From Oopsacas minuta (taxonomy: Eukaryota; Animalia; Porifera): DNA of 64,000 bases. Shown in pieces: positions 980 through 64,000 of the stretch. Made by a program: the position numbers and the translations under genes. The notes below the pieces were generated by a model. It was not told where the DNA came from. It did no database searches and saw nothing but the letters and a program-made list of their open reading frames with translations. Position 1 is the stretch's first letter. Every line of letters starts with the position of its first letter. The stretch lies in assembly GCA_024704765.1 (NCBI GenBank), contig JAKMXF010000334.1, positions 1 through 64,000 of the forward strand, written 5' to 3'.

Positions 980-1000
980 TAGTATGATTAATTGAATACA

Positions 1001-1152: not shown

Positions 1153-1532
1153 TAGTGGAACCCCGCTTAACCGCGAGCCGCCACCTCAAATTACGGCGAC
1201 TTGGCAGGCTAAGACCTACTAATTTTGGCATGTGTATGGAATGTGATAAATCTGGGAATATATCCTAATAATATCTAAGTGACATCTCAAAGCAAGCAAA
1301 TATGTATAATGAATAATTAAAATCAGAATTTTGGGAAACCACAAAAACCACTTCCTACGAAACGCTATCATCATACCCTGAATATTTAATTACCACGAGA
1401 TATTTCTTACATTCTAAACACTTCCATAACAACCAATGAGGTATTATGGTATGCTCAAGCTACACAAGTATAAATAGAGTCAGAATTAACTAAATCTTTA
1501 CATTCAAATAAATCAAACTACTAATCGCTAAA

Positions 1533-2774: not shown

Positions 2775-3529
2775 TTTGGTCTATATTTTACAGTTAGTTG
2801 ATATTAAACTTATTGCCTTATTACAATAGCCTACTCCCGTCAGTTCCGGATAGCCGCACGTGCGGACTATGCGATCGACAGGGCACGGACTAGTTGAGCC
2901 CTTGACTCCCGTTACATCGAAGCTCAAGGGACTGCGAAAATTACTTCGATATAACTGATGTAATATGTACACATTTGGGGGTTCTTATATTTTTCTACTT
3001 GTATTAGATAACTTCCAAAAGTGTCAAAATCTCGTATCTTACAACTTATCAATAGGAGAACAAAATTCATGGATTGAGGTTAGATAAACTTTCATCCAAA
3101 ATTTACCCTAAAATTGTTTGGTGAAATTATTTTTAGGTCATAGATTTTTGGTGATAAAATATGATAACTTCCTCATTGAGTCGTCAAAAATTGACGAAGT
3201 GGAGTCAAGCTTAGGCTTGTACTTCCACCCTTTCTTGTTTTTAACCCTGATGTTACAATCAATAAACGTTCAACTCTCAATAATACGAAATTCAACATAA
3301 TACATAATCTTACAACCCAGGGCTTACAAGCATAGTACACCAGGTAAGGCCATTGCCATTTGACCATGCTCTGGCCAAGATCTATAGAAAAATATATAAT
3401 ACAAATGATTCCGTCGCCCTCAACAGGTCTCTATTAACGATAGTTTTAAATCGACAGCATAACAATCTAATAACTGACTATAATTATCACAACATGGATA
3501 CAATCCAACTAACAAATAACTAACAAAAA

Positions 3530-4649: not shown

Positions 4650-4820
4650 TCAAGCGTGATATAATAAATACTATTCATTTACAAAATTATTAATGGCATT
4701 AAAATAAGTATGAATACTTTATTGGAGGTGATCGCTATTGGATGTTCCTTCCTAAATATGTTCTTAAGAAAATTTCATTTTTTCCCTTAACTTGGTTACA
4801 TTTCGTGTTAGCCTTTAGAG

Positions 4821-5016
4821 CAGAGTTTCCCAACCTTTGTACGAATCTACACTTAACAATTTTCAGTAGGCCCACTCCCATAGGCTACTATGCTATCCGT
4901 GCAGGGGCGAATATTCCAAAACTGATTAAGCTCGTCAGCCCAGCGGTCCCCAGGCCTACGCCCCATTTGCGTGTATACCCAATAACAAGTCGTGGACATC
5001 AGGTTGGGAAACACTA
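4821..5016. mobile_element. hAT-like MITE (CAGxGTTCCCAACC ends)
   Basis: Ends cagagtttcccaacc ... ggttgggaaacacta. The end motif resembles those of the elements at 31640 and 37151. Confidence 0.55.
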
Positions 5017-5769
5017 GTGAGTGAAAATTATGAAATAATTGTAAATTTGTAGATATCTGAATATTTTAGTATACTATGATCAAAAATATTCAGAGTCCTG
5101 GAGAGTTACATAAAAATTGAATTAGAATTCAAATTATGGAATTTGATGTATCTAAAAAGGTGTCCAACACAGGTGTGCCTTTAAATAGTTATTGAAATTA
5201 TCTATAAACGGTAAATAACAAAAGCCCAAATATTACATAAATGTAACCACTACTATTCAGTTAATAAGTTCTATTAATCAATTACAGAAATTTATCAGAA
5301 CATCAGTGTATAGCATATTTGAGTGTATGATTATGTAAAGAGTATGAGGATATGCTAACAGTCAAGGTATTATATAAATAGGATATAGTGAGAAGATAAT
5401 GTCTGTAATTTAGTGAGAATTTAGGAAATCTTGTATTATTTGAAGAATGGCATTGAAAAGGAATTTGCAGTAAGTTGAATATTCGTGAATTACTTGTAGT
5501 ATACAGTGGAGTTTGACTATTAGCAAATCGTATTTGTATGAATCTATATGCTATATCCATGAAAAGGCGGATTTTGCTATTAGGCAAATTGCTAATAGGC
5601 GATTACACTACTGTAGTTAAAATAATGCTCATAAGGTTATATGAATAAATATATAAATTTTTGAGGGGTGAATTCACGATTATGGTATTCGTATTATGAA
5701 GTGTTCACAAAACCCCTGCTAGAACAATTTTTGTGAAATTCCTACTTCAACCCAGATTGCGGGAAAATA

Positions 5770-5915
5770 CATTGTAACCTCCACAAACGGTGCCTATGGA
5801 AACGCAGTGAAAAATAAATAGAGCGAATTCCTACACCCATACAAATGAGCCCCCACAAACGGGGAAGCATTTTCGGCGTCCCAGGCACCCCGTTCACGTT
5901 TGTGGGGTTACACTG
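5770..5915. mobile_element. MITE family B copy
   Basis: TIR cattgtaacctccacaaacg / cgtttgtggggttacactg. Confidence 0.8.
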
Positions 5916-6084
5916 ACAATAATGGATAATGTACAATCAATATAATTCGCGATTTCTAATAGTGTAACCAAGTATAACACTTGGTACAATTACACTCATC
6001 ACTTTTGAAGCCCACTAAAAGCATTATTCGAAACTTGAATCTCTACTAATAATAATAAAGCCAAGAGACCTTACGTTCTAATAA

Positions 6085-7681
6085 CTAACTATAAATCTTG
6101 GTTGCTACACCAGTAGCTATTGTCTTCCTAGAATCTCTCACTGTAAAGCGTTTCCCCTCCTCAATAGCCAGCGGGATAACAAACTCAAACGTTAGTTCGA
6201 CATCTTCCCCTGGCATAACCATTTCTTTACCACCTTTCAGTTCCGTCACGATGGCTGATACAGCTGACATTCTAGAGAAAACCACAGGCTTGTAACCCTT
6301 CATAAACGGAGTATGTCTCCCTCCCTCCTCTTTAGATAGGACGTAGAGCTTCACGTCTGCTTTTTTCACAAGTTTTATTGATCCAGGTTTCGCGATTATT
6401 GACCCTCTCCTAACCTTATCCTTACTCACGCCACGGAGTAGAGCTCCTATAGAATCACCAGACATTGCCTTAGGTACTTCTTTATAGAACATTTGTATCT
6501 GCGAAATAACCGTACGGATTTTACCAGACTTCCCGAGTATTTCCGCTTCATTTCCTTTCTCTATAATTCCCCTCTCAAGCGACCCAACAGCGACCGTCCC
6601 CCTGCCCTTTACAGTGATCGCTTTCTCTACATTAAAGAAGAATGGTTTATCGACAATCCTTGTGGGTAGTCTCACGTGTTTATCTAACATCTCAACCAGA
6701 TTTATAATAGAATCGCGGCCTTTCACAGGATCCTTATCATTAAGCGCATACAGAGCAGAACCAGCTACGAACGGTATTTTATCAGAATCAAATCCATGGA
6801 TATCTAACAGTTCTCTAACTTCTAATTCGACTAATTGTGTAATCTCGTCATCATCTACTGTATCAGTCTTGTTAATATAAACAACTAAATCTTCTACTCC
6901 TATTTGTTTGGCTAGGATAACGTGTTCTTTTGTTTGAGGCATTACACTATCAGTAGCAGCTACTACTAGGATAGTACCATCCATCTGTACTGTACCTGAA
7001 TAGAGGAGAGCAAAATTAATAAATACCAAAAATATTTTATAAATACCAAATGGCACTGTGCACTGTCACAAAAATCGGTCACTTGGCTCGAGTCTTCTGG
7101 TTTTTGAGATTTGCTTAGACGTATAATACGTCCAAATAGATAAAGTCGCCTCACGTATATCGAAGTCACAGGAACCGTGATAATTATTTAAATATAAGCG
7201 GAATTCGAAGCTATTAACAATGTGTTACTTCGACGGTTTGGGACCATATTTGTACAATTTTAGGCTTCAATATAACGGTAGTTGTCTGTACATATAATTA
7301 CGTACCAGAAATCATGTTTTTGATATAATCAGCATGTCCTGGACAATCCACATGTGCATAATTCCTCAATTTAGATTGGTAATTAACACTCGCAGCATTG
7401 ATAGTAATCCCTCTTCTCTTCTCCTCGATTGTACTATCAATTCTATCATATGTCTGATATTGAGCTAGTCCTTCTGCCTCCAAAACTTTAGTTATAGCGG
7501 ATGTAAGGGTTGTTTTGCCATGATCCACGTGGCCAATGGTTCCAACAGTTACCCACGGTTTTTCACGTTGTATAGCTTCTACATTGGTCGAGAGGCAACC
7601 AATAGAAATACTTAATGGGGATAGCTTGAGGAAGTCAGTGACTCTATAGCGGAGGAGGTTACGTGCAAAAAGTGAATTCAT
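6085..7681 (-). CDS. TUFM: Mitochondrial elongation factor Tu (divergent), 2 exons: 7681-7306 and 6995-6085
   Basis: N-terminal transit-like peptide, [12 protein letters not shown] (G1), [25 protein letters not shown] (G4), GSAL, GRGTV and EGGRHTPF. Phase-1 intron G|GTACGT ... TTCAG|GT. Confidence 0.93.
7141..7290. mobile_element. MITE family A copy in the TUFM intron
   Basis: Shares gttacttcgacggtttgggaccatatttgtacaatt with the copy at 1001-1152. Ends caatataacggtagttgtctgta. Confidence 0.7.
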
Positions 7682-9940
7682 TTCAATTATTTTATTTCAA
7701 AAGTGATAAGGCTATAATAGAATATACGTATTATTGTGTAAATATACATGAGTTACAAATTGCATAAGTGGGAGGGCGGAATGGCATACAGCTTTAGTGT
7801 GTAATGTTGATGTGAGATTTTGGACAGTATTTTTGGGTTGTCTCGTCGAAAAGTGCCAGAAGAGCAATATTGCCTTGAGGCCAGACAAGATTCTCATCAA
7901 AAGGCATAGCTAGGCCAATATGCATATCTGATGGTACTGGGTAAGTGCGGCCAGGGCCGTGTGAAGCCTATATAAAGTGTCGCCCCTCTTCCGACGACCC
8001 TGAGTGCGGCAAAGAAGCAACATAAGTCGCACTGTAGTACTATTCTTTAGGAAATATAAGTGAGCCAATATATTTATGGCAATAGCGGCATGCACACTCT
8101 AGCTATGCGCTGGCTAGTGGCTACATGCTATATCATACTAAATAATAATGTCCATAATTACTTTAATTGAAGTTTTATATCATATATTCTAACATGCTTT
8201 GGAACACCATCAATCCATTTCTTACCTAAATGCAAGGCTCTCAACTCTCACGATTTCGGGTCTACAAATACTGCAGAATCCCCGGTCTTTTCATTGAAAA
8301 CCAATACTAAATTGTATCTATCTTGAGATTTTGGACGAATTTCACGATTTTGAAGGTTTCCAGGTTGAAAGCGATGTAAATAAGCTATAAAATCCGACGA
8401 TATAAAGTTCATTTAATTTACAGAGTAAAGATGACACAAATAAGTGTCGCATAGAGCCAGTGAGTCGGGAAATAAAGATAAGTTGTACCCTGACAGCAGT
8501 GACATTTTCAAAACACAGTCGTAGAATACTATTTTAGTGCTATAAGCCATAGAATTATGTAACCACAGATATATTGTCAATCACTCATAGCTATACTTTT
8601 ACGTATATTATTGATGGTATCAATAATTTACCTAATTTTGTAGACAAACGAAATGACAATAACAATAAAATGAGACTATAAATGACAGTAATTGAAGGGC
8701 TGCGAGAAACAATGCTGTATATTACAAATAATATTAGCTTTGGAGATGTCAGTTCTTGCGAGAAGAATAGGTGAGTAATGGATGAGATTATTCTGAGATT
8801 AATCAATGAAATATCCTAACAAATTCACTGCAAATACATGAACTTTTGCGAATATTTTGTGCTTTCTAATCAGGTGACATAATTATTAAATTTTCAGCTA
8901 ATGATATGATTACAATAGTTAGTTGGCTACTTAGAACTTGTATTAATTTGATGACCAGATATCAAATATGATAAGTGATTTCCTAATTCAGATATTCAGA
9001 GATGGAAGTTCATGGCACCAAAGAAATATTTTAACTTTTTCGAATTCCTCATATACATTCCGTGGGTTTCAATGGTGATTGATGAATCATGGGCCCAAGA
9101 TGCCTAGATGGCGCTGAGTGGCGATTCGAAGGTATTTCTATTTTGTCGAATTGATAGCAGATTTTACACACACACATATGCACTGGTTAGGAAATTAGTT
9201 TCTCTTCTGTGAAGTTGTGTAGCAGTTAAATTAGTTGAAAATGCTGTATTATGGCAATGTCGATATAATCTCCCGTTTTCCCGATTTTACAGTTTGAGTG
9301 TAATGTGCTTATGTCCAGTCGAAACCTGCCAAAAAGCGGACGTTCCACCTTCGGTAGCCCAGACATATGTTCACATTTTATTCCCGGTTAAAACTCATAA
9401 AACACTGAAAACCAACATTCAGTCTAATTTCTTCCCTTTGGTAAAGTATACGTACATCACACTCTCTATAGTAAATAAGCTTATGTTGGTGGGTGTGCTT
9501 GTCATCTCGCATATAAGCAATACGAATACAAAAGAATTCCCTCAACCACACACAGACTTAAATTTAGTTCCTCTTTTTAATAGAACACACTGCATGAGGC
9601 TTTCATTGTATTCACATTTAACTAGAATATCCGTGCAATTATTTGTATTCTTCGTGTGGTAATTCAATAGAATAGCACAGTACATGCTTATAATATGTGA
9701 GTCCTGGGCATACCTTACATGTTCAAGAAGACTTAACTTAATAACATAAAAAGCCATTGAACTTCTATTCATATTTGTTCAAACTCTTACCAACACGCTT
9801 GCGTAGCAAATAGTCCCAGATTCGCTCTCTCGGCGACACAATTTAATGTTTTAAAACTTCTTTGTAAGATAATAGTATTTGCAGGTAAATAATTGTAATT
9901 TTTTGAGTTATCCAATTCTAACTGGCATAAACTTTATAGC

Positions 9941-10025
9941 CAGTGTGACCGCCACAAACGGGGTGCCAGGGAGGCCGAAAAATGCTACCCCGTTTCCACA
10001 GGCCCAGTTTGTGAAGGTTTTGCTG
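9941..10025. mobile_element. MITE family B, short copy
   Basis: cagtgtgaccgccacaaacgggg ... ccgaaaaatgctacccc ... tttgtgaaggttttgctg. Confidence 0.65.
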
Positions 10026-10976
10026 TAATGTTTGAATTTGTTTCTGTTACGAACTTTTAAGTGTTTTGCTCAGATTGACTGGTTTGTTGGAGGCGCAATT
10101 TCACAAGACTCACTCAAAATTGCGTGTCAACCAAAAGCAATTGTTTTTGCCCGTATCTGGCCCAACCAATCCGTTTGAGTTAGTCTATCGTCCCGGAATG
10201 TCTGAAACCCAATCGAATCCATTTTTATCAGTGCATTTATTTTTTCGAAGGAACAGATCTTTTTTACACAACCTAATCAATGAATTTATGTGACAGTCAC
10301 AGTAAGTTTGGTGTCCTGCTATTTAAGGTCTCACGCATCGTTCTAGCAGCCATTAGATCCCTAGTTTCCATATTTTAAGTCATAACCCTACTAAACACAA
10401 CGTACATAACTCTCAACACTTTGAATTGTATAAGAGATCTGGATTACACTTCTATTCATTGAAACATGGTTTTCATACCTTTTATGGATTTGTAAACTCA
10501 AGAAATTTGAATATATATTAGGCTAATTATAGTTAATAAATAATTATTAATATTTTAAGAAATATATCTTTGTGACAAGTCAGAATTTCAAAACTACGTT
10601 ATACGAATTGCCTGCTTTCTTGTCCATCAAACTTATACTGTAAGGTATGGCTTATTATGGCTGTCAACAGTTTTGTTTATTAATTGCAAATTGATTGCTT
10701 AGAAATATTTACAAAATCATTACTGCTAATATGAAATTAGTTCCTTTCTATTATTACTCTATAATAATGTAATTAGCGTACTATGCTATGGGTTTACACC
10801 TTTAGTTTTGATATAAAATGATTGAAGGACGGTTTATATGTAATTTGGATTGTAAGTTGAGTTACAATGTGTGTGTCATAGTTTACTTCTTTGATAAAAT
10901 ACTGTAAATTTCACCTATATAATCTATAGAGCAGCTATAGGACAACGTTTACCTTATTCACTCCAGTAGATTCACT

Positions 10977-16103
<5,127 letters not shown>

Positions 16104-17874
16104 CATCAGATGACTTAGCGTCATAGAAATACACTTACACACATGCAAACACAGCTCAATAACAAAGAGAAGTGATTATCAATTTTAATAGCCCCTTCCC
16201 TCCATACATGTCAATTATTATAATGCTCACTAAGGTAATTATCATATCATTTTGTATACTGAATGAATTATCTAATATCTTATTTATTATTATTGTTGTT
16301 TGTAGTTATTTCTTACTTACATTCTTAGTTTGATATTAATTTGGAATTTGGAATAATTATTTAGAAATAATGTACTAATATTTTGTGGGTATTTATTAAC
16401 GAGTTTATATGCGGACTGAGATACAATTGAAGGTTTTATTTTAGTGTAATATATTGTTAAAACGGGTTTTGCTGTCTCTTCTAACAGAATTCTTGCTCAT
16501 TTCAGAGACGTAGTTAGGCAAACATGAAGGTTGCGGCAAGGATGGTCGTATACTTACCAATCCCAAAATATCCACAATTTTCAAAATTTCCAATGGAAAT
16601 ATTATTGAAATCCCAGGATAATCTATGGATCTTGGAAAGCTGGCTAATATGGTGTCGCACACTACGCTTATGATTGAGATTATTTCTATTTCTACCAGGT
16701 TCCTTACCACAATTTTTGGAATGAAATGATAAGAAATCATGTTTATATTGTGCTGTTACATTTTCCCATTTTATTGCAGCATAGATCAGCTGTTCAATGT
16801 ATAATTGTCCTAATCGATTAGCTAAGCAACAAATATGGCAAAATGTATGTATACTATTTTGTCCTTTCGCCTAATTCTATATTTAAGAATAAAATTAATC
16901 ATATAAATACTATTAGAATACCGACACAAATTCCCAAATATTTTCCATCATTATATCACCATTGACCATTTATGATCACCCAATCCGTGTAGCACATTTA
17001 GTCCTCACCAAGGTTTCTTCTATTGTTTAAACTTTCTATCAATTAAAATTTTCAAATGCTGTATGACTGTATGGAGAAATTCCCTCTTCTTTATTTCCCA
17101 GTTCAAAACATAATTTTTGCAATAATTACAGTTTTTATAGAACTGTAAAATTGAAATTCAGCCCCGGAAGATAAGAAACTGACTTCTAATGTTGTTGGTT
17201 AATTACAATATTTTATCAAAGGTCTGTAATATTATGCTATACTTATATGCTTGGATCTAATTTGATGTATGTAACTGTGTATAAATATTGCAACTACAGT
17301 GGAACTTGCATATTCCGGCCACTATCAGTAATCCAGAATTCTACTAAACTGACATTATTTGTCCTGACAGAAAATCGAAATGTTTATACTGTCAACTCCC
17401 CGTTATATCGAAGCTCAAGGAACCGCAATAATTACTCCTATATAACCGATAAAACATATTTTACTTAGACAGTTTGTGGCAATTTCGGATTGGTATAAAC
17501 GGAATATTTTTGATATATTCGTGTTCGATTTAATAGGAGTTGCTATGTACGTAGATTTCCTACACGTCTAGGGGCCAGGCTATTTTGACCCCGATTAACT
17601 ATAGCGTATTATCCAGTAATTCACGACTGGAGCTATTTGATAATTTAACACTATTTGTATGGTTTTGTTTCTGGCCAAATGATCCAATCAACGGTGAACC
17701 AAGCTTAAGCGGAGTCTACTATACCTTGAAATTACATTTCCCACCTTTAAAATATTTCTATTTCTATTCTTGTTCCTAAAATAGCTGCAATTCACTTCAA
17801 ATCGTAATACTTACAGATTTCTAAGAATATAAATTTATTATACAAATCATATCAAGAATTATCGAATCTGGTCT

Positions 17875-32988: not shown

Positions 32989-33762
32989 ATGTCTGATATA
33001 ACTATTTTGAAACTATTCATAGTTAAAATCTCAAGAACTTTACCGAAGGAAGATCGAGATAAATTTCTTCCCAAACTGAGATCATTTTGCGCTAAAATAA
33101 ATCTCGATTTCCCTGCGGAATTATCAATACAACCTAATTTCCTAAAATTAGCCGAATTCGCTATTAACAGTTCATGTATTACTCCAAAAGATACAGATTT
33201 ATTGACTCAGCTACTCGAAGAGACGGACAATACGAAACTTCGTGATGAACTCTTCGGCTTAGAAATCGGTTATCATAGAAAGTCACATAGACGTAGTAGC
33301 TCATATCATACGTTTACACAACCGAAAAAGCATGTATTGCATTACACAACACAACCGAACTTTTGTACAGATCGGAAGACTGAAAAGATCAAATTTTTCG
33401 ATGCCCCCTCACGAAAACACCCTCCTACTTTCGCACGTAGCAATTCGCGAACTTCTTGTGATGTGAGAGAGAGAAATGATGATACAATGCTTACTGATAT
33501 ACAAGTTATCACATTTTGTCGCCACATTGGTCAAAGTGAATGGAAGCAATTAGGAGTTATTGGGTTTAATTTATCTTTGACAGAAATACAAAGAATTGAT
33601 TATGATGAAAGGTATATGCAAGATAAACTAATTAAAATGTTTTCTGTTTGGAAGAATCTAGCCCTTGGTTCGAGTGATTATCCTCCTTTCACTACACTAG
33701 GTCTGAGACAAGCTGCAATTACTGCCGGACTTAATGGACTTGTACACAGATTGAAAATATAA
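32989..33762 (+). CDS. FADD-like adaptor: N-terminal DED-like domain and C-terminal death domain, 257 aa
   Basis: ITPKDTDLLTQLLEETDNTKLRDEL resembles DED helices 5-6. HIGQSEWKQLGVIGFNLSLTEIQRID...KMFSVWK...LRQAAITAGLNGLVHRL is a death domain. Confidence 0.7.
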   Translation: MSDITILKLFIVKISRTLPKEDRDKFLPKLRSFCAKINLDFPAELSIQPNFLKLAEFAINSSCITPKDTDLLTQLLEETDNTKLRDELFGLEIGYHRKSHRRSSSYHTFTQPKKHVLHYTTQPNFCTDRKTEKIKFFDAPSRKHPPTFARSNSRTSCDVRERNDDTMLTDIQVITFCRHIGQSEWKQLGVIGFNLSLTEIQRIDYDERYMQDKLIKMFSVWKNLALGSSDYPPFTTLGLRQAAITAGLNGLVHRLKI

Positions 33763-35344: not shown

Positions 35345-36778
35345 TTAATAAATATTAATACAATTAATGCCCTCAGCAAACACACACACAACCTTGTTAT
35401 CACTAGTAATACAAATCCCTTGAGTATTTGATTGCACTTCTTTCTTACTACCAATCTCTTGCATCAATTTTCCTTCCTTTGAGAACACTATGAGAGTATT
35501 CCCATACAAAATACTGAGGATTATTAGTTCATCATGAGTAACACATAAATAGCTAGGGATACAGCATTCTCTGCTAATTTCAGTTAAGTTTATCATCGAG
35601 TTAACATGCTCTCCTTCTTTTGAAAATGTATGTACACACGTGTTTACTTCTAGATCCAAAACATAAACAAAGTCCCTTACAGCTATATCCTGTGGTTGTT
35701 GTAGTACTCCTGAACCAAGGACACTTTCAATTGATAATTTCAGGTTAAAAATGCATACTTGATTATTTCCTGTATCGACAAGGTAAATGCTGTCCGCATA
35801 CACCGTAATACCTTTTAGTGATTTGAATTTTCCTGGTTCAATTCCGCGCTTGAATCTTGTTATATTTAGCAATCTCCAATCTTCTATTGAGAATTCTATA
35901 ACGCTATTTAGCTTATCATCTGTTATATAGCAAATACCCTTATGTGTAGCAATGCAGGAAGGTCCTTCCAATGCCTCTTGTCCAAATTCCGCTCTGAAAT
36001 CACCGGTAACATGGAAAACGATTACTTTTCGCAGTTCCCTAGAAACAACATAGATATCCTGTCTTGTTGGTTCAAAATGAATTCCTCTTGGCTGGGTCAG
36101 TTGTCCGTATTTAATCCCTCTTTTTCCGAAACTTAAACTCGGGTTTTTCCTTCCCACGAAACTCTTTACCGAAAGCTTATCTTTCGTTTGCACAGATTTT
36201 TTGATAGGTTTTGAGGCAACTTTTGGCTTCTCAACTGTTACATCTGGTGAATCCAATTCTGTATAAATATCTGATAAATATTCATAGTCAGGAGTTTGTT
36301 TTGCCATCTTTGCTGGTTCGCTTCTCTTTCTAGGTGGTGGGTGCGGGGGAGCTTTTCGTTGAACCACGGGATGGTTCTCCACTGAAGCCATCGGTTCATA
36401 CTCCAATTCTTCTTTGCATTTTGTTGTTATTATGCTTCCCAACACCCTGATAGAATCAATTATTTCGTGTAATTCACCCTCAACAATATATCGAGGCATT
36501 TCTATATTTTTCCTCAATTCTTCCAATTCATTATTTACGGTAATAAGTCTCCCTTGAAGTATGTTAAAGGCTCTATCGCTTGTTACTTTCATGGCGTTAA
36601 TCTTTGTAATTTTGTCTTCTAGCTCTGTGATACTAGTTCGAGTTTCTTCTCGTTTATTTTTGTATTTCTTTTTCAAAATAATAATTTCCTCTAATAATTC
36701 GTTCTTCCTTCCCAGCGCACATTGTATAATCTTATCGAATATTGATTTAATTGTTGATTCGATTTCTGTGAACTCCAT
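35345..36778 (-). CDS. Coiled-coil + Pro/Tyr-rich linker + NHL-repeat protein, 477 aa, intronless
   Basis: N-terminal heptads, then NHL blades FGKRGIKYGQLTQPRGI, IYLVDTGNNQVCIF and LQQPQDIAV. Confidence 0.88.
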   Translation of the reverse strand: MEFTEIESTIKSIFDKIIQCALGRKNELLEEIIILKKKYKNKREETRTSITELEDKITKINAMKVTSDRAFNILQGRLITVNNELEELRKNIEMPRYIVEGELHEIIDSIRVLGSIITTKCKEELEYEPMASVENHPVVQRKAPPHPPPRKRSEPAKMAKQTPDYEYLSDIYTELDSPDVTVEKPKVASKPIKKSVQTKDKLSVKSFVGRKNPSLSFGKRGIKYGQLTQPRGIHFEPTRQDIYVVSRELRKVIVFHVTGDFRAEFGQEALEGPSCIATHKGICYITDDKLNSVIEFSIEDWRLLNITRFKRGIEPGKFKSLKGITVYADSIYLVDTGNNQVCIFNLKLSIESVLGSGVLQQPQDIAVRDFVYVLDLEVNTCVHTFSKEGEHVNSMINLTEISRECCIPSYLCVTHDELIILSILYGNTLIVFSKEGKLMQEIGSKKEVQSNTQGICITSDNKVVCVFAEGINCINIY

Positions 36779-46845: not shown

Positions 46846-49800
46846 ATGGCAATTAGTATGAGTAGTGAAATGAATGATGCTGATATAGAGATGTTGTTTG
46901 GAGAAGATCAGGAAGGTTTCAATCTTGAAGAGATGCTCATGTTTCCAGAGGAGGTTGAAGTTGCATTAGAAAAAGTTAGTTCCAATTGGCCTTATATTTC
47001 AATACATTTATTACTATTTTATGTTTTCTAATTATTCATGCTAGCCAACCTTTAGATTCCACTAAATGACTGTCCAGGTTATTTCTGGTTTTCTCATTTA
47101 GGCGTTCAGGGATTCACTGCACTTATCAATGCATATTTCTCACCAACTATTGCATAAATATTTGGCATTTCTGCCTCTTAATGATTTTAAAGTTCATCCA
47201 CGCATAATTTACATCTTATTTTTGTAATTATTTATGGATTCCTTGAGTTTCCCCGAATTTATTTAATTAGCCATTAAATGGTTCTCAACGAGCTTAGCAT
47301 CAGGAAGAGAAATTCTGATGTTTACAGGCAAAAGTATACTAAGAAATTGACAGGCATGAGTTGGCAGTTAGCAGTCATGCGTATGTAAAACAGCTACAGT
47401 GGATGGCGGTTATAAGAACACAGGATATACGTTGAGCTGCCATCCTCTGGAAAACTTTTCTCATATAATTCTGTATATTTTATACTGGTTAAAGAAATGT
47501 CTTACTAATTTGCTACTCGCAAGGGCGTTCTTATAGCCAGCATCCACTGTAGTAGTTCAATATTGTAAAATACACAGATTCCGATGCTAATAGTATTGAT
47601 AAATTTGATTTATTCCATAAGCAAGGCACTGGCCATCCGAAATTAAATTAAATCCAGTTCTCACCAAACCATAACTAATAGAATTACATATTATTTTTAT
47701 ATTTTCCTTGACTTTCGTAAACAATGGACATTTTGGGAATCATCACTCATGGCTAGCAGTCGACAATCTGAAAGCAACGAAAACGAACAATTGGCATTCT
47801 CACTAGAAACCTATCCACTAGTTATCCAACCGCCTGATCATTCACCTGAACTTATCCTTGTCGACTCGATTGATGAGGATTTTGATTACGACAACCCCCG
47901 AAAACGTAAGCACCCTGTGAACCCGATTGAATGCTCCCAGGTAGTTGTATCTCCACCCAAACCAAAATTAGATACATCAGCAGAACTCGATTCTTATTGT
48001 TGTTCAATTTGCTATGAACCATGGACAACTACTGGGATACATAGATTAGTGTCATTGAAATGTGGGCATCTTTTTGGGGAGAATTGCATCGACAAATGGT
48101 TGCGTCAGTCAGCACAGACCTCTGAGAGGAAATGCCCTCAGTGTAAACGTCTCGCAGCTTTCAAAGACATTCGACCAATCTACGCAACAAAACTTGTAGC
48201 AGTTGATAATTCTGAATTAGCATCTGCACAGAAACAGGTTGAGTCTGAAAAAGCTAATACAATTCAGGCCAAAAAGTCTGAAACGAATATGGCTCTCAAA
48301 TACCAGCTTTCTAGAGCTGAATGCGAACGTTTGAAATTACAAGTGCTAGAACTTGAGGGGAAATTACAAAATAAACAAATCATTAACGATGAAAGTGACA
48401 GTCAGGAATCGGAGATGGATTTAGTGAGTTGTAAAGATGACTCAAAAATGGAATTAGCTGTCTCGAAAATCAAAGAGCTTTCCCTTTCCTCATCAGGAGG
48501 TTGTCGTATTTTAGAAATCAGTTCATCTCTAGGTATGATTCTCGTATCACGTCCATCCACTTCATTATTATTCCGTGGTTGCGGACTGGCTAAAATAAGC
48601 ACACGAGACTTGAAGGAATATCAATTCGTTCCTGTGCATAGTAATGTTATTCGTGACGTCAAATTTTGTCCAAATAAGGAAGATTTGCTGCTTAGCGTTT
48701 CAACTGATAAAACTGCGAAACTTACCAGTATTATTACCAATTTGAATGTATCTAGCTATGTGCTATCCGCACAGTCTTGGGCATGTTCATGGGATATTGA
48801 AGATCCGAATTATTTCTACGCAGCTCTGAATAACGGTAAAATTGAACAGTTTGATATTCGACTGACTAACAGTTGTGTAAAAACTCTATCCATTGGTGTT
48901 TCAAAGCCAATAACTTCAATTTGTTCTGTACCGCCAGCGAATGTTGGTGGGATTCTTGTAGCGACTATTGGAGGGTGTTATTTTCTTGAGAAACATAATG
49001 TGGACAATTTCACATCTCTCTGTTTACCTGATTTAACTGGGAATTGTACCAGTGTGACCTATGACCATGAAAATGCTAAATTTCTCGCTTCATTCCGTCC
49101 AACGTTGACAATGCCGATGACACGACATGTGGTGTGTGAATTCTCGCGATATAATCTCCCTTCGCAAGCCACAGACACTTTGATTGTTTCAACACACCTT
49201 CATCAATTTACAGGTGGCTCCAGCCAGAGTGCACTTTCTAGATCGCAACTTTTCACACCTGTTTCTCGGCCATCTCGCCTATGTATCGCATTTGGTGACG
49301 AATCAACGCGCTCACTCGAAATCTGCGATACTTCAAATTCGAAAAAACTAACATGCTATACTAGTAAAGCAGTAGTTGATGTCAAATCTTATTTCAATAC
49401 TATTGCAGCTCTCACTGATGAAAAATTGTTTATTTATGAATTGAAATAATTACATACCAATCGTACTTATTAGAAACTTTATGGACTGATTGTTCTCTAT
49501 ACTCTCAAATTAGACTTACCTCAATTATCAAATTTTAATGAAATGGTGATGTGTATTTGAAAATCCTGTTTAGAAATATGTGAGTATTCTATATTAGTAA
49601 ATACAGTAAGACCGCCACAAACGAGGGCAATAACCCCGAAAATTGTTACCGGTTTTCGTTAAACAATCCCACTTTGTGGAAGTTCATTTATATGGCACTA
49701 GGAATTCGCATTCTAAATCACAGGAGAATACATTGGTACATTCTGTAAGGGACAGGTTAGTATGGCTTCAGGAATAGCGATAAGTGATGAGGATGTGTAT

Positions 49801-52800
49801 ATCAGTGATGCACGACTCCATTGCATATTTGAGTTTAAATTACCGAATTTCAAATTAATAACTAGAGTAGGAAAGGTAGGATCTGGTATGGGAAGTTCCT
49901 TTATCCTCGTAGCATCACCATAGCTCATAACGAGGACATATTTGTTACTGATAGTCATGACAACAGAGTTGTTGTTATGACACCTAAACTAAACTATAAA
50001 CATTCCATTACACACAGCTCCATGACAAGACCATATGACGTCAAACTACTGGACGATAAGGTTTACATTCTGAGCTGTAAAGACAATCCTTGTCTCCATC
50101 TATTCAATCTTACTGGTGAAAAGCTCCGTTCATATATTTCATGTAGTGAGCAAGGCAACGAACAAGTTATGCAATGTCATTCATTCTGTTTCGATAAGAA
50201 ACAGAATATTATAATGGGTGACTGTCGTGCTAATAACATAAAAGTGTTCACTCAGGAAGGAGTTCTGCTACACACACTGGGAGATACTCAAGAAGAATAC
50301 AAGAAAATCTACTCTGAGGGCATTGTAGTTACCAATGATAACAAAATTATTTGTAGTTCTCATTGTACTATCTTTGCATACACATTTTCTGTAACTAATT
50401 TAATCTATCAAAAGCTCCCTAAATAACAATTGTGTAGCAATGGTATCTATTACTATGGGCTTCTAACAAGGTATCACCAGGATACCACAGTTATCAGCCT
50501 ACGAATATATCACAGATACAAATCATCAAGTTTATAGCTCTTTTCAATACGATTCGAATAATACGTATCATTAATTTTACAAACACTCTTCACTTTGCTT
50601 GCTCGCGATCAGTTCGTATCCTATCGGTTGCTTCCTAACTGTATTTTATTCCCCATTAGATTTGGTGTTATGGTTGTCAGGATTGAAATTAGTTTCGATT
50701 ATTCCTCTTAATCAATTCTTTAATGTCTTAGAGCACGTTTGATTAACATGAAAAATACAAAAAAGTAGAGTATTACAATACAATTTTAATTCTAAGTTCA
50801 AAACTTGAACAAACCTAAGAAATTCATTACTGTGTCTGTCTGAGAACTGCCCTACACATCCTCACTAAATTTCCGCTATTTTTCTGTTCCCATTTGGCCG
50901 CAGCTATATTCAAAGCATTTTTGAATTCGCTTCTTTCTTCTCTACTTAAATACACCCAAAGACAATCGAACAAATCCTGAATGAATAATGGTTCAATGAT
51001 AATGTCGTGTTTAACTAAATTTAACTGTTTTCCAAAATGTATCATATACCGATTCCGATATTCATCATTATATTCATTGTGTAGTTTAGTTCTATGAGGT
51101 TGTTCTGTGTCTGGTTTCAAACTGAATCCTGTCAGGCAATGCACTCCATCATTTCGGCATTTCTCACATAGACTTGATAAGTGTGGTTTTTTCATCACCC
51201 AATCATTAGTGACATTTTCCAAATGATATACTTTTGTCGGCCATTCAAATAACCACATTCTTTACATTCTAACTTGTAACCTTGCCATGAATACCCAGAT
51301 GTCCATGCACTTCTACAATTCTCACACTTATAATGCCCGAAAAAACGCTTCGAATCTATACCATTCGCTAATGGTAGTGTTTCTAAATATCCACTCACAA
51401 TTTCAATGTTCTCTCCAGGTATACGATAGTATATTGGTATGAGTTGTGGTTTCCTTGATTTTCTGCTTTTTCTTGAACGACCTGGGTATCTACTTGCCAT
51501 TAGAATGTTGTAATTGTTGGAAGAATCTTGTTATTTTAATTCAAGAATTACAAAGCCTAATAATTAAATCTTAATTAACTCCTTTGTTCATAAAAATAGA
51601 ATTTTCTTACGTCCTTTTGTCCTAAAATTATCATAATTCACATGGCATGACCGCATGAGGTTCTTATTATTACATCACTGAATAATCATTTTCAGACAAT
51701 TAATATTTCCGATAACTAATGATACAGTCGAACCTCCAAGATCCAGGTACTTTTTCCAAAAAGTTTGATTTGACCATTTCCAGCTACTCTTCCTAAAATA
51801 GAGTTGTACTTCATGTCTGACACGTTTCTTAGTGACCACCAATTATAACCTCTAGTTCCGAGAATTCTTATGCATCTCGATATTTCATTATATGTCTACC
51901 ATTAATTAATAATGCATACTTGCCATCGTGAGTGAATAAAAAATCAGACAGAACGTACCGGGGCATTTCGGGACGTAGCATACCTACATTAGGTCAGACT
52001 CCAAAAAAACGGACATCTACTATTTTTGGCAAGCTTTGGCTGGACATTAGTCTCAACACATGTCCGAAAATCAGGAGAGTTAGCAAGGCACCCTCCAGAC
52101 AAACCTGTCCGGATCTGAGGTTCGACAGTACAAATCTCCCTGATACTCCAATTCCCCAGCTAAGCCATTGAATGTAAATATATTATTCAAAACAACTAGT
52201 TAATCTAGAAATGACTAAACACAAATGAAGTTAAGTATTACAAATACAATTATATGGGTAATTATTAATTCAAATCTAGTTAGAACTAAAATGAAACATT
52301 AACGTGTTTGTCTAAGTACATCCTTACAGATATCTGCTAAATCTTCTCTATTTCTTTGCTGCCATTTGGCCGCGGTTATTTTCAAAGCTTCTTTGAACTC
52401 GCTTTTATCCTTTTTATTTAAAGTATCCCAGAGATTATCGAATAATTCTTGAATGAATTGTCCTTCAATCTTAATCTCCTGCTTATGTAGACCCAGCTGT
52501 TTTCCAAAGTGTATCATAAACTGATTTCGATGTGAATAATCATCATCATTATGCAGCTTTGTTTTACGCTTTTTATCTGTGTCAGGTTTTAAAGCCAATC
52601 CAGTGAGACAATGTACTCCATCGTCTTGACATTTCTCACATAGACTTGATAAATGCGGTTTTTTCATTACAAAATCATCATCTTTATTTTCCAAATGATA
52701 AACTTTTGTCGGCCATTCAAACAAATCACATGTTTTACATTCTAACTGGTACCCTTGCCATGAATACCCAGATGTCCATTTATTTCTACAAATCTTACAT

Positions 52801-55800
52801 TGATAATGCCCGAAAAATCGTTTCGGATCTATCCCATCTTCTAATGGTTCTTTTACCAAATATCCACTTACAATTTCCTCATTTTCTCCAGGAATTCTAT
52901 AGTATATTGGAATTAATTCTTGTTGCTTTGATTTTCTCTTTTTTCTTGAACGACCTGGATATTTGCTTGCCATTGAAGTTTTTTTTTGACAGAATATGTG
53001 ATAATTATATGTGTAAAGTTTCAATGCCTAATTTATTTGGTAAACTTATCCTTCTGAATTCATAATAATAAAATTTAATTGTGCTGACTATAGTGTAACA
53101 GTATTAATGTATTCTAAATCTATCAGAAAACTGTAATAATGGGTAAGTATTATCTTATTCCATAAAATTTCTCTACATTTTTAGACATTTACGAATTTGT
53201 CAAATCATTAATTAGTGATCCTAACAGAGACCAAAGGTTTTTGAGATGAAATTGATGGCTAATAGGATATTTGCCCATCATAATATCCCTACAGTTATTT
53301 CGTTATGAATCAATGTTATTGCATCTAAGTCTGACTTTTTGGATCAGGGGTTTATCTAAGTGCTTGGCTGACACCTAAAAACCCGACTGTGAGACCCATA
53401 TTAGTACAGGATATGTTTCTGTCTAAAAAAGGGACATCCAAGAGAGTTCCTGCAAGAACATTGTCGGACCAGAAATTCCTGGATGAACTCTTGCTTTCGA
53501 TCCGTGAGACTTGACAACTATGATACTACCATCAATTGTAGATTATTATAAACTATATGATAATGACACATAACTGCATTGCAACCTTTGACCAGAAAGA
53601 GGTTATGCTGTATCTATAATAACGACCCTATGATTTATATCAAACGTCAAATTTCGCATCGTCTACTCATCGGTGTAGTCGCCGTGTGGCCTGAGTGGCT
53701 GGTCCAATGATCCCCTAACAATTATATCAGTCCCCAAATAATTGTTCTCCACTATGCCCACGAGTCTAGTTAGCCTTCTTGTTAGAAAAATGTGTTTATA
53801 TTTCCTTTATACATTTCAAATATATTTCGAGTTAAAGGCATATTCCCTAGTCTTAAGCATGTAGATGCAAAGCACCCAGCGGTGTAGCTTGCTTTGGCAG
53901 ACTACTGGCTCACGGGTGCCGCATTAGGGGGGAGGTGACTTGAAATAAGGGGAATGTGGTGCAACATAAAAAAACACCCTGTCTAAGCCACTGAAACTAC
54001 CACAACTTAAATTACACCATACACGATGCAACAAAGTTACATCGTGTATGGTTGGTTAACTGTGTCATTGTACGTAAAATTATTCAGAGCAAACTTAACA
54101 ACAATAAATTAGATAGTATAGAAATAGAATTTGAATAAATACAAAAGTAAATAAATACCTAATTCTCAAATGAATCAGTAAGTAGTCTGTCTTAGTACAT
54201 CCATACACTTATCAGATATATCTACTCTATTTTTCTGCTTCCATTTTATTGACGCTATTTTCAAAGCTTCTTTGAATTCGCTTTTACATTCTCGACTTAA
54301 ACTATCCCAGAGATTATCGAATAAATTTTGTATGAATTGTGGCTCAATGACAATATCGTACTTATCCAGACCCAGTTGTTTTCCAAAGTGTATCATATAT
54401 TTATTATTCTCTTTCAGACGCGTTCCATCAAACTCAGGAATAATGTGCACGTTATGGTTCAACATGTGTCCAGTTAGACAATGTACTCCATCCTTTTGGC
54501 ATTTCTCACATAGATCTGTTAAATGCGGGGTTTTCATTTCATGATCATCACTGACATTTTCCAAATGAAATACTTTTGTTGGCCATTCGAAGAAATGGCA
54601 TTTTTTGCATTCTAACTGGTAACCTTGCCATGCATACCCAGATGTCCATCTACTACTGCAATTCTCACATTGATAATGCCCGAAAAATCGCTTTGATTGT
54701 GTACCTTTCTTTAGTCTTCTTTTTTCCAAATATCCACTCACAATTTCAACTCCTCCAGGAAGACGATAGTATATTGGTATGAGTTCATGTTCGGCTGATT
54801 CACTCTTTTTCCTTGAACGACCTGAGAGCCTACTTGCCATTAGAATATTGTTATTATACACTCCATTTGTTAACAATTGTGATATATATGAAGTTGTGAA
54901 CAATTAAGAATGCTTACCAGCAATGCCTAATTCTCAAAAGTAACAAATTCTGCACGAATTCTAGCTTGTGAGCATAATATAGAATTTCAAAATGTGCAGA
55001 ATTCCTGAATTGTTGGTGGGTGTTCTCTTATTTCAGTCATATGATTAACTACATAGATGGCAATTAACCTCATTTTCCAAACATAATTCAAACAGTTTAT
55101 CCCTCCCAATAGATCAGCCCTTGACCCCTTGGGTAGAAATTATTACAGGGACTCTATTTTACTCTATGATGCGTACTAACGTCAAATATATATTTACAAT
55201 TTGTACATACATAATATGTGTTTGTCCACTTATATTTCTTGTTAGAAATTATTGCAAATTTCTTTTAGTTATTTCCAGATATGGATCCTTTATGTGCAAG
55301 AAAGTTTAATGAGATCGATTTCATAAATAAGGAGTTTCCTACTGAACAGGTATTGTTGTTGACTTCTTGTTAATTGTTGTTCCCTACAACTTAATAATAT
55401 ATTTTCATTTAGTCTTTAGCTAATATCGATGACTTTATGAGTAGGATGAAGTTAGAAATAAGGTAAGTACAAAGTTAACACCCACTTGTCCTGCAGTTTG
55501 CATACTCACAACAAACTTTCAATAGACCCTCGTTAATACACCAAATGACCTTCAAATTTCATTATGCATATCCAAATTAGCCGAAATATGTAAGAATCTT
55601 TAAAGAGAATATTTAATAATGGGTCTAACGAAGTGAATGTAAATTCTGCGTTATGCTCTCCGCGGCCATATTTTAACGAGAGTCTAGATCCATTGTCCTG
55701 AAACAGTGTTTCCCGCATAATTTTGGTAATCGCTCATTTTGGGATTGTGTGGGGCTTCCGTCGCATATACACATATTAAGCCATATGTATAGAGTCTTCA

Positions 55801-58800
55801 TTTTAACGCAGCTAGATATTCTAAGTGCGTTAATTGACGCGCTTAACGCGCGCTTTGGGGGAAACACTGTCCCAAAGTATCTATATGATAATCCTTTATC
55901 CATATTCTTATATACCAGAAATCTGGATAAAGATATTCGTCAGATAGTACATGGTGAAGCTGGAGTAGGATATGAAGGAGAAGTGGTGAGTATATTCTGT
56001 AGTGAATTTGAAAACAAATATTAGTATACTTTTGTAGCTTAAAGTTATGGTCAGGTATTGAATTAATTCAGTATGTACTTCTATGGTGGATAATATAGTA
56101 CGTGGTTCTTTATTCAATACAATATTTGCAATTCGTCTATTTGCTATAAGCAATTTTTCATGTATTTGTTGTATAGTAAATACTAATACACATTATAAAT
56201 TCTCGGATTAACAATGTATGCAATATATGATTTGCTTTTAGACAAACTCCATTGTATTTCTGTTGGACAATAGTCGATGGTGGAATTAGAGACCTCATAT
56301 TTTAGAAACATACAATCTTTGTCAATTTCTATCTACCATCATATACATACATTGATATCATTTAGGCATTATCTGAGGCAAGAGATGCAATCAACAAGCT
56401 ATTTTCGAGAATAAAAGACATAAAGGAAAAAGCAGAAACTTCTGAGAAAATGGTTTGTATATGCTTAATGAATGCACACATCTTCTGATAGTAAATATTG
56501 TCTGGGTGAACTATTCCATCCCTCGCCTACTAGTTGTTAGTGCTAATCGCTTATAAGAACACCCTTAGGATAGTAAAACATGTTTTTATAATAAGTAGAG
56601 CTCCGCCTTAAACATTTAACACACGATCCGATAGCATCTGGGATTTTACTGTCACTAGAAAAATCCTAGCAAAATCAACTTTCAATATCAGTTTAGGGTG
56701 ATTGGTGAGTTAATACAAGTTTGCATTTTAATAACCAGTTGTAATGTCGAAAAGAAAATCTAAATTAGATTTCCCATTATCTGTTACTTCATTTGTTTCA
56801 ATGAAGATGCATACATGTGAGTTAATTACATTGGAACCTTCTACAACACTCCCATATCATGAGTACTTGAAATTTGAGCTACAAAACGGATCACAAGATC
56901 TAACTAATATATCTTTCAATGAAGAAAGTATTAGATATTGTATAGCCTTCAAATTTGGTGACATAACTTCTACCAGGATGATTCTGTAATACAGAGTTTC
57001 ATGAAACAGTAGCTCGAATGTTTATGAGAAATCTCGCATAATTATCAACTTAAGTATAGAATACGTATATGATCATTTTGAAATTTAGTCAAGTCTTCGC
57101 TTGTCAAATTGTGAACTTCCGTTATATCGAACACGGATATTTCGAAATACCCGCTCATATCGAAGTCCGAAATTGTACAAATATGGTCCCAAACCGTCCA
57201 ATTCACATTAATTCGTCAGTTATATCGTACTCCGATTTTATCGTTATTTTTCGCGGTCCCTTAAGCTTCGATAAAACATGAATTTACTGTACAACTTCGA
57301 GCTAAACCTATTGCTATAACCCATTGACAAGAGAGTAGTATTCACCATTAATTCTGTTTATAGGTTAAAGCCATTACAAAAGAAATTAAGGAACTCGATA
57401 CAGCCAAAACTAATCTAACATTCTCTATTACAACTTTAGAGAATCTCTCAATGCTAGTTCGTTCTATTGAAGATTTATCGTGAGTTATCTCCTCGATAAA
57501 TGAGTTGAAATATCACATTTGATTCAACTAAAGTGCTAAACCTTATTTTGCAATCAGACAAACGGATAGACAGAGTCGAATAAACAGACGAACAAACAAA
57601 CAATATAAGGGAACAACTGAGATTTTTAAAATACATTACACGTAATTATGTAATTATGTAATTATGTAATTATGTATATTCTTTATATAGCAAATGGTTT
57701 GTCGTATGGAAATGTCCTATACAACATCGAAAGGTTACTTTTCAAAAAATCCTTTGCTATTTGAACAATATTTTGAGTGAAATTATATTTACTAAATTAA
57801 GATTCATGTTGTAGGCAGTGGCGCTGCCAGGTTTTTGTCACGGTGGTGTCGGCCATGCGGGTGGTGCGAGCAGTGTTGAATTGTATTGAGCTATTAAGTA
57901 ATTATTTGTCAAGTAACTCAAGAAAGAGATTAATTAGTTCATAGATTGTCCTAAATCTAAACACTACTGCCTGAAACCATACAGAAATTATATTTATCAA
58001 ATATTCACTACCATTTTACTAATTTCAGCTTACATTCGTCTGAACAAGTTCAGATGATCCGCATCAGCCCCGCAACATCTTGGCTACACCTCTGGTTGTA
58101 GGTACGTATCTGCATCAATGTACACCAGTTAAAGTATACGTATTTTAATTTATGCCCAGGATCTGTTATTTAAATTTGATTATTCTTAATACGTACTATC
58201 GTAATTTGTCCTACTTGCCACCAATCACGAGGAAGAATATTATACTTGTTATGGGTTATGAAAAAATCTAACTGATGTAGCCACAATATATTATTGTCCA
58301 GTTTAAACAAATTGGACACTGCACAATAAGAGTGTTTACTAGCTTCAATACTATTTTCAATTCATGAACATTTATTTCAAAGGCATTTATTGAAACTAAA
58401 AGTGAAACATGAGCGGATTCATTTCTCGTATTTGGCCAAACCTCTCTCATATTGAAACATCATATTTCAAAACATATTTTGATTGCATAACAACCTTCAT
58501 GATTCGGTAGACGTTTATTAATTAAACAAAATTATAGTTTAGTGCTTTCATTTTGTAATTGAATTTCTTCTAGAAATTGGTACTTTTTCATATCTTATAT
58601 TGCTAATTTTGACACGAATATATTCTATTAAATCATTTTAAATATTCTAAGAATGTAATTCCTTAAAATTTATTTCTCCTTATTTTATATAAATGTCAAT
58701 ATCAGATTATTAAACAATAAATTAGATTTGACCATATAAGTCAAGCTCGTTTAACTCAACTATATTTCTAAGAAATCAATCTTCTATGTATAGCAATTTG

Positions 58801-60598: not shown

Positions 60599-60881
60599 AT
60601 TATAAGAAAAGTTCATATAAGCTAATTTATGCATACACAGATTGATTTCTGAAAACTATACAAAAGCTTAACGCTCTATTAGGGTTGTGATAAGTATTAG
60701 GGTTATGATAATATTGAAAGTAATGGAATTCTGGTAATTAATTAAGGAACTTAACTCTTAATAGTGAATCTGGAAAGAAAATACATTCTAAGCGAATTTA
60801 ACATTTGAGTTAATATAAATAGCAACTGAGAAAATAAACAAAACAACAAACAAGTAAATAAATAAATTGAAAATAAATATA

Positions 60882-61202
60882 ATGGAATATTCAACATACG
60901 AATCAATTGACATTAATCAAATGAGTTACTCAATGGAGCATATTTGCGAAATGCCTATTCCTGAGTTAAATGAACTCATTTTCAAAGCGAATATGACACA
61001 AAAAGAGAAATTGGATATAAAGAATAGAAGAAAATATTACAAAATCAACAAAGCTTCTTTGAAACAGCAACTAAATCGTCTTACACAGGAAATAACTGAA
61101 TTGGAGAGGGTAAAGAAGGAATTGGAAGATGAGAGAATTCAATATAGAAGAGATATACTTTTCTACAAGATGGAGTTGAAGAAGGGGAACACAGTATATT
61201 GA
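60882..61202 (+). CDS. Small Maf/CNC-like bZIP protein with degenerate basic region, copy 1 (106 aa from the ATG at 60882)
   Basis: YSMEHICEMPIPELNELIF resembles the Maf extended homology region LSDDELVSMSVRELNQHL. It is followed by IKNRRK and the zipper TQEITELERVKKEL (MafK TQKEELERQRVEL). Confidence 0.7.
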   Translation: MEYSTYESIDINQMSYSMEHICEMPIPELNELIFKANMTQKEKLDIKNRRKYYKINKASLKQQLNRLTQEITELERVKKELEDERIQYRRDILFYKMELKKGNTVY

Positions 61203-63065: not shown

Positions 63066-63386
63066 TCAATATACTGTGTTCCCCTTCTTCAACTCCATCT
63101 TGTAGAAAAGTATATCTCTTCTATATTGAATTCTCTCATCTTCCAATTCCTTCTTTACCCTCTCCAATTCAGTTATTTCCTGTGTAAGACGATTTAGTTG
63201 CTGTTTCAAAGAAGCTTTGTTGATTTTGTAATATTTTCTTCTATTCTTTATATCCAATTTCTCTTTTTGTGTCATATTCGCTTTGAAAATGAGTTCATTT
63301 AACTCAGGAATAGGCATTTCGCAAATATGCTCCATTGAGTAACTCATTTGATTAATGTCAATTGATTCGTATGTTGAATATTCCAT
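63066..63386 (-). CDS. Small Maf/CNC-like bZIP protein, copy 2 (identical protein, convergent orientation)
   Basis: Mirror image of 60882-61202 within the inverted repeat. Confidence 0.7.
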   Translation of the reverse strand: MEYSTYESIDINQMSYSMEHICEMPIPELNELIFKANMTQKEKLDIKNRRKYYKINKASLKQQLNRLTQEITELERVKKELEDERIQYRRDILFYKMELKKGNTVY

Positions 63387-64000
63387 TATATTTATTTTCA
63401 ATTTATTTATTTACTTGTTTGTTGTTTTGTTTATTTTCTCAGTTGCTATTTATATTAACTCAAATGTTAAATTCGCTTAGAATGTATTTTCTTTCCAGAT
63501 TCACTATTAAGAGTTAAGTTCCTTAATTAATTACCAGAATTCCATTACTTTCAATATTATCATAACCCTAATAGAAAGTGCTTAATACTGTACTCAGAAT
63601 TGTTGGATAGATTTAGACACGTGATACGTGAGCCTCTCTTCCATAAAAATACTTTCAATAATCTATGAATACAAATTCACAGCTTTCACGACATTTAACT
63701 TCTAAGCATATCTTTTGTTTATTTTGAGATCTTACACGATTGATCGGGGATTTTGTATTAATTCACATTTATTATGATAAATTCTAATTTTTGAGGATTA
63801 TTTCTTTGGAATTTTTGTTTGATTTAACCAACTTTGTGATTTGTATACAGGACATGATACATGTCTGATGATATACCGGTAGTATGCAATCTAGCATTTT
63901 CTATTCGAAATGTATTTCCCTACAAACAACTGGGTAATGTACAAGTATGCATTTGAAGATACTTCACGAAGAACTGAAAATATTATTGTCAAATGGTTCA

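Follow-up and report, generated by a model that had tools for sequence, protein, structure and literature searches.

Here we present a tandem trio of small, intronless genes in a 64,000-nucleotide (nt) stretch of the genome of the glass sponge Oopsacas minuta (assembly GCA_024704765.1, contig JAKMXF010000334.1, positions 1 to 64,000 of the forward strand; hereafter the window). Their products join a ZAR1/ZCCHC24-type zinc module to a C-terminal helical domain, and with a probability of roughly 0.55 we take them to be a lineage-restricted family of predicted RNA-binding proteins, in which the new helical domain would bind a partner or act in regulation. The analysis demonstrated the homology of the zinc module, a four-helix model for the C-terminal domain, a restricted distribution, purifying selection, changes in copy number and RNA-like coverage of the middle gene. 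The zinc half is ordinary, and what makes the genes interesting is the helical domain, which is modelled with confidence as a folded unit and has neither a Pfam family nor a description in the papers searched. The family is a clear-cut example of an old RNA-binding module of animals to which one lineage has added a domain of its own.

Three related genes in tandem

An earlier reading of the window, made from the letters and their open reading frames (ORFs) and here called the sequence-only reading, had proposed three diverged minus-strand paralogs of one common layout. Translation of the ORFs located three such related genes at 50.8-54.9 kb, and a repeat search independently recovered the trio as direct repeats in three copies, spaced 1472 and ~1870 nt apart. 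Similarity between the repeat units is confined to the coding sequence plus ~40 nt. Four public sequencing runs of one study (X1-X4) cover the stretch; all three copies can be read without introns, and these runs contain no splice-like joints inside the genes. An Rfam scan of positions 49500-56500 gave no match. The three genes, and the site at which the first of them is interrupted, are as follows:

50827..51500, minus strand: copy 1, split in the assembly by a 1-nt deletion but otherwise the same gene; helical domain at ~50830-51057
51250..51251, minus strand: frameshift site of copy 1; on the plus strand AA in the assembly and in runs X1-X3, AAA in the X4 contig
52299..52973, minus strand: copy 2, intact, single exon, 224 amino acids (P0001)
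54175..54840, minus strand: copy 3, intact, 221 amino acids (P0008); helical domain at ~54178-54408

The missing base at 51250/51251 leaves copy 1 as two overlapping ORFs (51195-51500 and 50827-51258), and alignment of the DNA places the single gap at column 357, with the frame otherwise open on both sides. At this position the contigs of X1-X3 agree with the assembly; X4 alone among the four runs carries an extra A behind 51250, at a depth of 115.3 of 115.3. Read on the minus strand, the extra base changes GGTTATTTG into GGTTTATTTG, and the frame so opened reads CGLFEWP, like copies 2 and 3. The frameshift is likely either polymorphic or specific to an individual.

The N-terminal zinc module

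A full-length AlphaFold model of copy 2 reached a predicted local distance difference test (pLDDT) score of 82 and a predicted template modelling (pTM) score of 0.77. The protein divides into four parts:

52920..52973, minus strand: residues 1-18, basic tail (RSRKKRKSK); pLDDT below 50 for residues 1-15, hence predicted to be disordered
52602..52919, minus strand: residues 19-124, beta-rich ZAR1/ZCCHC24-type 3CxxC zinc module (CKIC, CKTC, PH-x4-CEKC-x5-HC)
52521..52601, minus strand: residues 125-151, variable linker of low confidence, with pLDDT down to 57-61 when averaged over blocks of ten residues
52302..52520, minus strand: residues 152-224, four-helix C-terminal domain, outside Pfam

The basic N-terminus described by the sequence-only reading is present in the copy 2 translation, and for its RSRKKRKSK run we infer a resemblance to a nuclear localisation signal. 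The cysteine-histidine motif reported there (CxxC...CxxC...H-x4-CxxC...HC) was also found in the translations, and in an alignment of the family nine positions (C59, C62, C79, C82, H93, H107, C112, C115 and C122 in copy 2 numbering) are invariant in 22 of 22 members. The three CxxC pairs (C59/C62, C79/C82 and C112/C115), together with H107 and C122, are conserved across these members as a ligand pattern.

Profile and structure searches agree on the identity of this half. All three copies score above the 27-bit cutoff for PF17180 (Zn_ribbon_3CxxC_2), with 39.5 bits for copy 2, 40.9 for copy 3 and 37.8 for copy 1. A profile of the 22 members matched the ZAR1 chain 9jko, a human ZAR1 domain deposited as its RNA-binding domain, at E 2e-4 in a search of PDB sequences; this alignment pairs the CxxC ribbons and the PH..LC.KC...C knuckle. 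The same chain is the best solved structural relative: Foldseek ranked it first for the copy 2 model, with a probability of 1.00 and a template modelling (TM) score by target of 0.54, the structure compared being a predicted one, and VIA-align superposed residues 46-124 on it with a Z score of 8.0 and a root-mean-square deviation of 2.7 over 79 of 98 residues, at 27% identity. Furthermore, a ZCCHC24-like cluster in the ESM Atlas matches residues 18-126 of the model at a TM score of 0.63. Among the relatives described below, P0024 and P0025 also pass the 27-bit cutoff for ZCCHC24_C (PF23490), with 34 and 37.4 bits, and P0026 and P0028 stay below it. The RTP-type family PF13695 scored 15.6 and 16.0 bits, below its cutoff of 23. 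On this profile and model evidence the sequence-only reading was right about the N-terminal half, which is a genuine 3CxxC zinc module like those of ZAR1 and ZCCHC24.

The human ZCCHC24 protein binds the motif UGUWHWWA in 3' untranslated regions and stabilises mRNAs (PMC11624195), and the related 3CxxC domain of RTP4 is the antiviral core of that protein (PMC8172065). By homology, RNA binding may reasonably be expected of the sponge module as well.

Two residues that are invariant across the family lie away from the ZAR1 ligand positions, H93 in the zinc module (~52695-52697) and C216 in the last helix (~52326-52328); additionally, position 155 (copy 2 numbering) is His or Cys in most members. 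It is conceivable that H93 and C216 contribute to a zinc site bridging the zinc module and the helical domain.

The C-terminal domain: four helices, not a death fold

The linker is the most variable part of the protein, with insertions and deletions in the 22-member alignment. Beyond it, the alignment and the models bear out a helical C-terminus of ~75 amino acids with the motifs that had been read from the letters. In the full-length copy 2 model the helices span residues 153-164, 172-184, 187-206 and 210-222 at a pLDDT of 90-97, and a model of the domain by itself has four helices in 77 residues (pLDDT 89.4, pTM 0.77). The high pTM of the full-length model hints that the two folded domains are packed together. 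In one relative, P0009, an internal tandem duplication of ~18 residues (residues ~146-163) repeats the first helix of the domain.

Searches with this domain returned nothing that would place it in a known family. Pfam has no family for it, the window copies giving no assignment and 18 members only scattered noise. Its profile drew chance-level matches from the PDB sequences, such as protein A and troponin C fragments; a feature search of the ESM Atlas gave no usable match, and a structure search there led to generic helical hairpins. The best Foldseek match in the PDB had an E value of 3.5. The nearest neighbours found by VIA-align among 48,161 chains were designed helical repeats, aminopeptidase C-terminal domains, CID and HEAT-like hairpins, mostly with Z scores of 6-7.8 and in one designed repeat of 8.4-9.0, a range that is common for helical models.

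The sequence-only reading had assigned this C-terminus to the death fold, and had proposed that the trio are RNA sensors that signal through it by polymerisation with adaptors such as the product of an ORF at position 32989 of the window. We give this proposal almost no credence. Behind it stand a loose resemblance of motifs and a PYRIN match touched at E 0.063 by one of 18 members, within a Pfam search that yielded no consistent Death-clan match and none at all for the window copies. Against it, both AlphaFold models have four helices rather than six, in 73-77 residues and at a pLDDT of 89-95, an outcome that the sequence-only reading had itself named as refuting the proposal. No DD, DED, CARD or PYD chain appears in the top 50 of the four Foldseek PDB and VIA-align lists, those for the last ~80 amino acids included. 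A genome scan with PF00531 found four Death loci, all of them outside the window, and hhalign aligned the helical family to these four Death domains with 0.2% probability over 5 columns. The proposed adaptor (32989-33762, plus strand, 257 amino acids) was rejected as well: Pfam gave nothing even at E 10, whether the ORF was searched whole or in halves, and the PDB sequences gave no match either. The 90 C-terminal residues of that ORF are death-domain-like by eye only.

The sponge domain is like members of the death-fold superfamily in its similar size, its all-helical composition and its C-terminal position in a multi-domain protein; that superfamily, however, is a six-helix Greek-key bundle, whereas the sponge domain arranges its four helices as two stacked hairpins. 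The wider idea of an immune adaptor was built on the death-fold reading and fails with it, because the helical domain is not a death fold. As far as these profile and modelling tools reach, a false lead is thereby removed: the trio are not death-fold adaptors.

Distribution and gene arrangement

A word-based search found 23 relatives, all from ENA assemblies; the accessions of the related assemblies are ERZ20067936, ERZ25071281, ERZ25072730, ERZ25072740 and SRR2064712. When the helical-domain profile was run exhaustively with HMMER against 1.84 billion representatives, 10 proteins (clusters) were recovered at E < 0.001, and the zinc module was also present in every complete match. In the O. 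minuta assembly, which was profile-searched for the family (61,460,524 bases in 365 contigs, ~35% GC), the helical domain occurs only in the three copies. The same genome has two further zinc-module loci without the four-helix domain, namely a second, unrelated tandem cluster of 3CxxC proteins of 145-161 amino acids on contig C66 (~432.6-444.1 kb) and, on contig C255 at ~373.6 kb, a 380-amino-acid ZAR1-like gene with a long disordered N-terminus.

The sequence-only reading knew of no described protein with this architecture. Our searches of Pfam, with HMMER and in the literature likewise found no catalogued protein with the C-terminal domain, and papers on 3CxxC proteins in sponges, or on zf-3CxxC with a death domain, contained no description of the trio's domain combination. 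From these searches the helical domain defines a narrow, uncatalogued family of few related genomes, probably hexactinellid, and the gene family appears to be confined to glass sponges and close relatives of them. The O. minuta genome is reported to lack many standard metazoan genes (PMC10280926).

The number of genes at one syntenic locus ranges from 1 to 7, with 1, 2, 3 and 7 copies in four related genomes, O. minuta being the one with three. One related assembly has a single copy beside RFWD3 and a Slo2 channel gene, another has two copies next to the Slo2 channel gene, in the corresponding place, and a third has seven copies between a VPS53 exon and RFWD3. The neighbours VPS53, RFWD3 and Slo2 are also present in the O. 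minuta window, RFWD3 as follows:

47749-49449, plus strand: RFWD3 ortholog, with RING and RFWD3 WD40 domain (E 2e-82)

Annotated RFWD3 flanks the array in two related assemblies; in the third, a 574-amino-acid gene without a recorded Pfam match occupies that place. With three neighbouring copies in the window and other copy numbers at the same locus elsewhere, the tandem expansion claimed earlier is well founded. In a maximum-likelihood tree the three O. minuta copies form one clade (support 94/88), and in the other arrays, too, the copies group with one another. Because the copies of each genome cluster together in this way, the tree makes the expansions lineage-specific or homogenised.

A more divergent subfamily forms a second array, of five genes, in one related assembly (ERZ20067936 ptg000249l, 247-17229) beside genes for an AIG1/GIMAP-type GTPase and a class C G-protein-coupled receptor. 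Some members of this subfamily have long low-complexity tails that end in a hydrophobic anchor; the array includes two long members of 574 and 673 amino acids, and one member has an Asn/Pro/Ser-rich tail followed by such an anchor. A hydrophobic C-terminal stretch was found only in the relatives P0021, P0024 and P0027; in the window proteins nothing follows the helical domain.

Selection on the family

Ratios of nonsynonymous to synonymous substitution rates (dN/dS) were obtained as Nei-Gojobori estimates. Among the O. minuta copies, a comparison that the sequence-only reading had recommended, the helical domain gave 0.18-0.39 and the zinc module 0.23-0.41, with higher values of 0.46-0.98 in the linker. 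These estimates show purifying selection on both folded domains and near-neutral evolution of the linker; together with its insertions and deletions, the linker value upholds the hypervariability noticed from the letters. Between species dN/dS is ~0.09, with synonymous sites near saturation. Copies 2 and 3 differ by a dN of 0.27 at a dS of 0.56, and the between-species dN is 0.25 at a dS of ~2.9. Since the two dN values are about equal, protein change sped up after duplication, though not above the neutral rate in the folded parts.

These estimates bear on whether the trio is simply a decaying or non-functional duplicate array without a selected function, which we consider very unlikely. Such decay is suggested by the frameshift of copy 1, seen in the assembly and in three runs, and by a truncated copy in a related array (A_5, 188 amino acids). 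Copies 2 and 3, however, are intact, and both domains have dN/dS values far below 1. Copy 1 is no exception: a dN/dS of 0.32 in comparison with copy 2 shows that it evolved under constraint, and its frame is open in the X4 contig. The family has also been kept at the syntenic locus across several genomes despite synonymous saturation, and copy 2 has RNA-like coverage.

An antiviral role of the family is possible by analogy. The trio would then be restriction factors, a sponge counterpart of RTP4 and Shiftless, that bind foreign RNA and diversify in tandem under an arms race, which is a special case of the lineage-restricted RNA-binding family proposed here. As a specific explanation we rate it as unlikely, with evidence on both sides. 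The copy numbers of 1, 2, 3 and 7 at one locus, the clustering of copies by genome, indicative of lineage-specific expansion, and the faster protein change after duplication (a dN of 0.27 between copies 2 and 3 at dS 0.56, equalling the 0.25 between species at dS ~2.9) all fit such a history. So do the C-terminal membrane anchors of some relatives, as found in amniote RTPs (PMC8172065), the position of the divergent array beside an AIG1/GIMAP-type GTPase gene, and Shiftless as the second Foldseek match, though a weak one at E 0.3. On the other hand, neither folded domain reaches a dN/dS of 1, and values near or above 1 are found in the linker alone, over few sites; PF13695 stays below cutoff (16 against 23 bits); and tandem expansion also occurs in germline and housekeeping families of RNA-binding proteins. 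A more detailed version, in which the helical domain is a new module for recruiting effectors or for oligomerisation and the family comprises glass-sponge-specific RNA-binding antiviral restriction factors, with soluble forms and, in sister genomes, anchored ones, is less likely still. That version, if true, would mean that the strategy of RTP4 and Shiftless had been invented independently in a lineage among the earliest to branch off within the animals.

Probable transcription of copy 2

In run X4, contig depth is ~700-2400 over 52262-53003, an interval that coincides exactly with copy 2; both flanks have 32-36, and copies 1 and 3 have ~115 and ~87. Depth thus rises 20- to 60-fold over copy 2 in this run, and X1-X3 are flat there. 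The O. minuta genome paper reports RNA-seq from the same project (PMC10280926). Judged by its contig depth, copy 2 is likely transcribed.

Proposed function of the trio

We propose that the trio arose by recent tandem duplication within a family of small, intronless genes, whose proteins each follow one plan: a basic disordered tail, a zinc module homologous to that of ZAR1 and ZCCHC24, a freely evolving linker and a compact four-helix domain. The zinc module would bind RNA, as its homologs do, and the helical domain would either recruit a partner protein or pack onto the zinc module and tune it. The protein may in this way control the fate of the RNAs that it binds. If the helical domain does recruit a partner, the family could reveal how RNA is regulated or policed in glass sponges.

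Several points weigh against this proposal. RNA binding by the family members is predicted from homology, and a partner of the helical domain is putative. PF23490, the second ZCCHC24 family, was not listed for the window copies even at E 10, though the knuckle motif is visibly present in them. The four-helix arrangement, as modelled, is generic, so that the fold is uninformative on function, and predicted-complex docking of the zinc half (residues 16-130) with the helical domain scored 0.00, a value that is not evidence either way. Finally, X4 likely is RNA-seq by its behaviour, its run kind being unrecorded, and contig depth is a crude measure of expression.

Other features of the window

Beside copy 1, a 149-amino-acid ORF at 49977-50426 (plus strand) has weak beta-propeller (TolB-like/NHL) similarity; by sequence it looks like a fragment of an NHL family whose full-length members lie at 1533-2774 and 35345-36778. 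Between copies 2 and 3, the stretches 53292-53579 and 53868-54155 have raised summed depth in the three flat-depth (DNA-like) runs, and many contigs continue from them into unlike sequence. A contig that skips 183 nt (53316 to 53500) was found in all four runs. Short dispersed repeats or a structural variant probably account for these stretches. Further along, identical 111-amino-acid ORFs at 60867-61202 (plus strand) and 63066-63401 (minus strand) are inverted with respect to each other and form a gene-bearing palindrome.

Comparison with known proteins

Human ZCCHC24 (PF17180 and PF23490) has the same zinc module as the sponge proteins, with two beta strands before the first CxxC and a closing PH-x4-LCEKC-x5-C knuckle, and it ends in a near-identical motif that is visible in a published tagging oligonucleotide (PMC11624195). 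The sponge proteins differ in adding a linker and a 75-residue four-helix domain, and ZCCHC24-like representatives in the ESM Atlas accordingly match only the zinc half of the model (residues 17-139). They also differ in being encoded by intronless tandem genes and in having a much shorter N-terminus.

The human ZAR1 domain 9jko, representing ZAR1/ZAR1L, is the closest solved structure to residues 46-124, but in ZAR1 a further cysteine-rich segment separates the second CxxC from the PH motif, and a C-terminal helical domain is absent. ZAR1 also has a long disordered N-terminal region.

RTP1-4 (PF13695) and Shiftless (SHFL) are likewise zinc-ribbon proteins of the 3CxxC or a related kind, and some of them are fast-evolving antiviral RNA binders that have multiplied into families. 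The C-terminal membrane anchor of amniote RTPs (PMC8172065) has similar counterparts in the relatives P0021, P0024 and P0027. The window genes differ from both groups in their sub-cutoff PF13695 scores, in the E value of 0.3 for Shiftless and in having no anchor, and neither the RTPs nor Shiftless has the helical domain that sets the sponge family apart.

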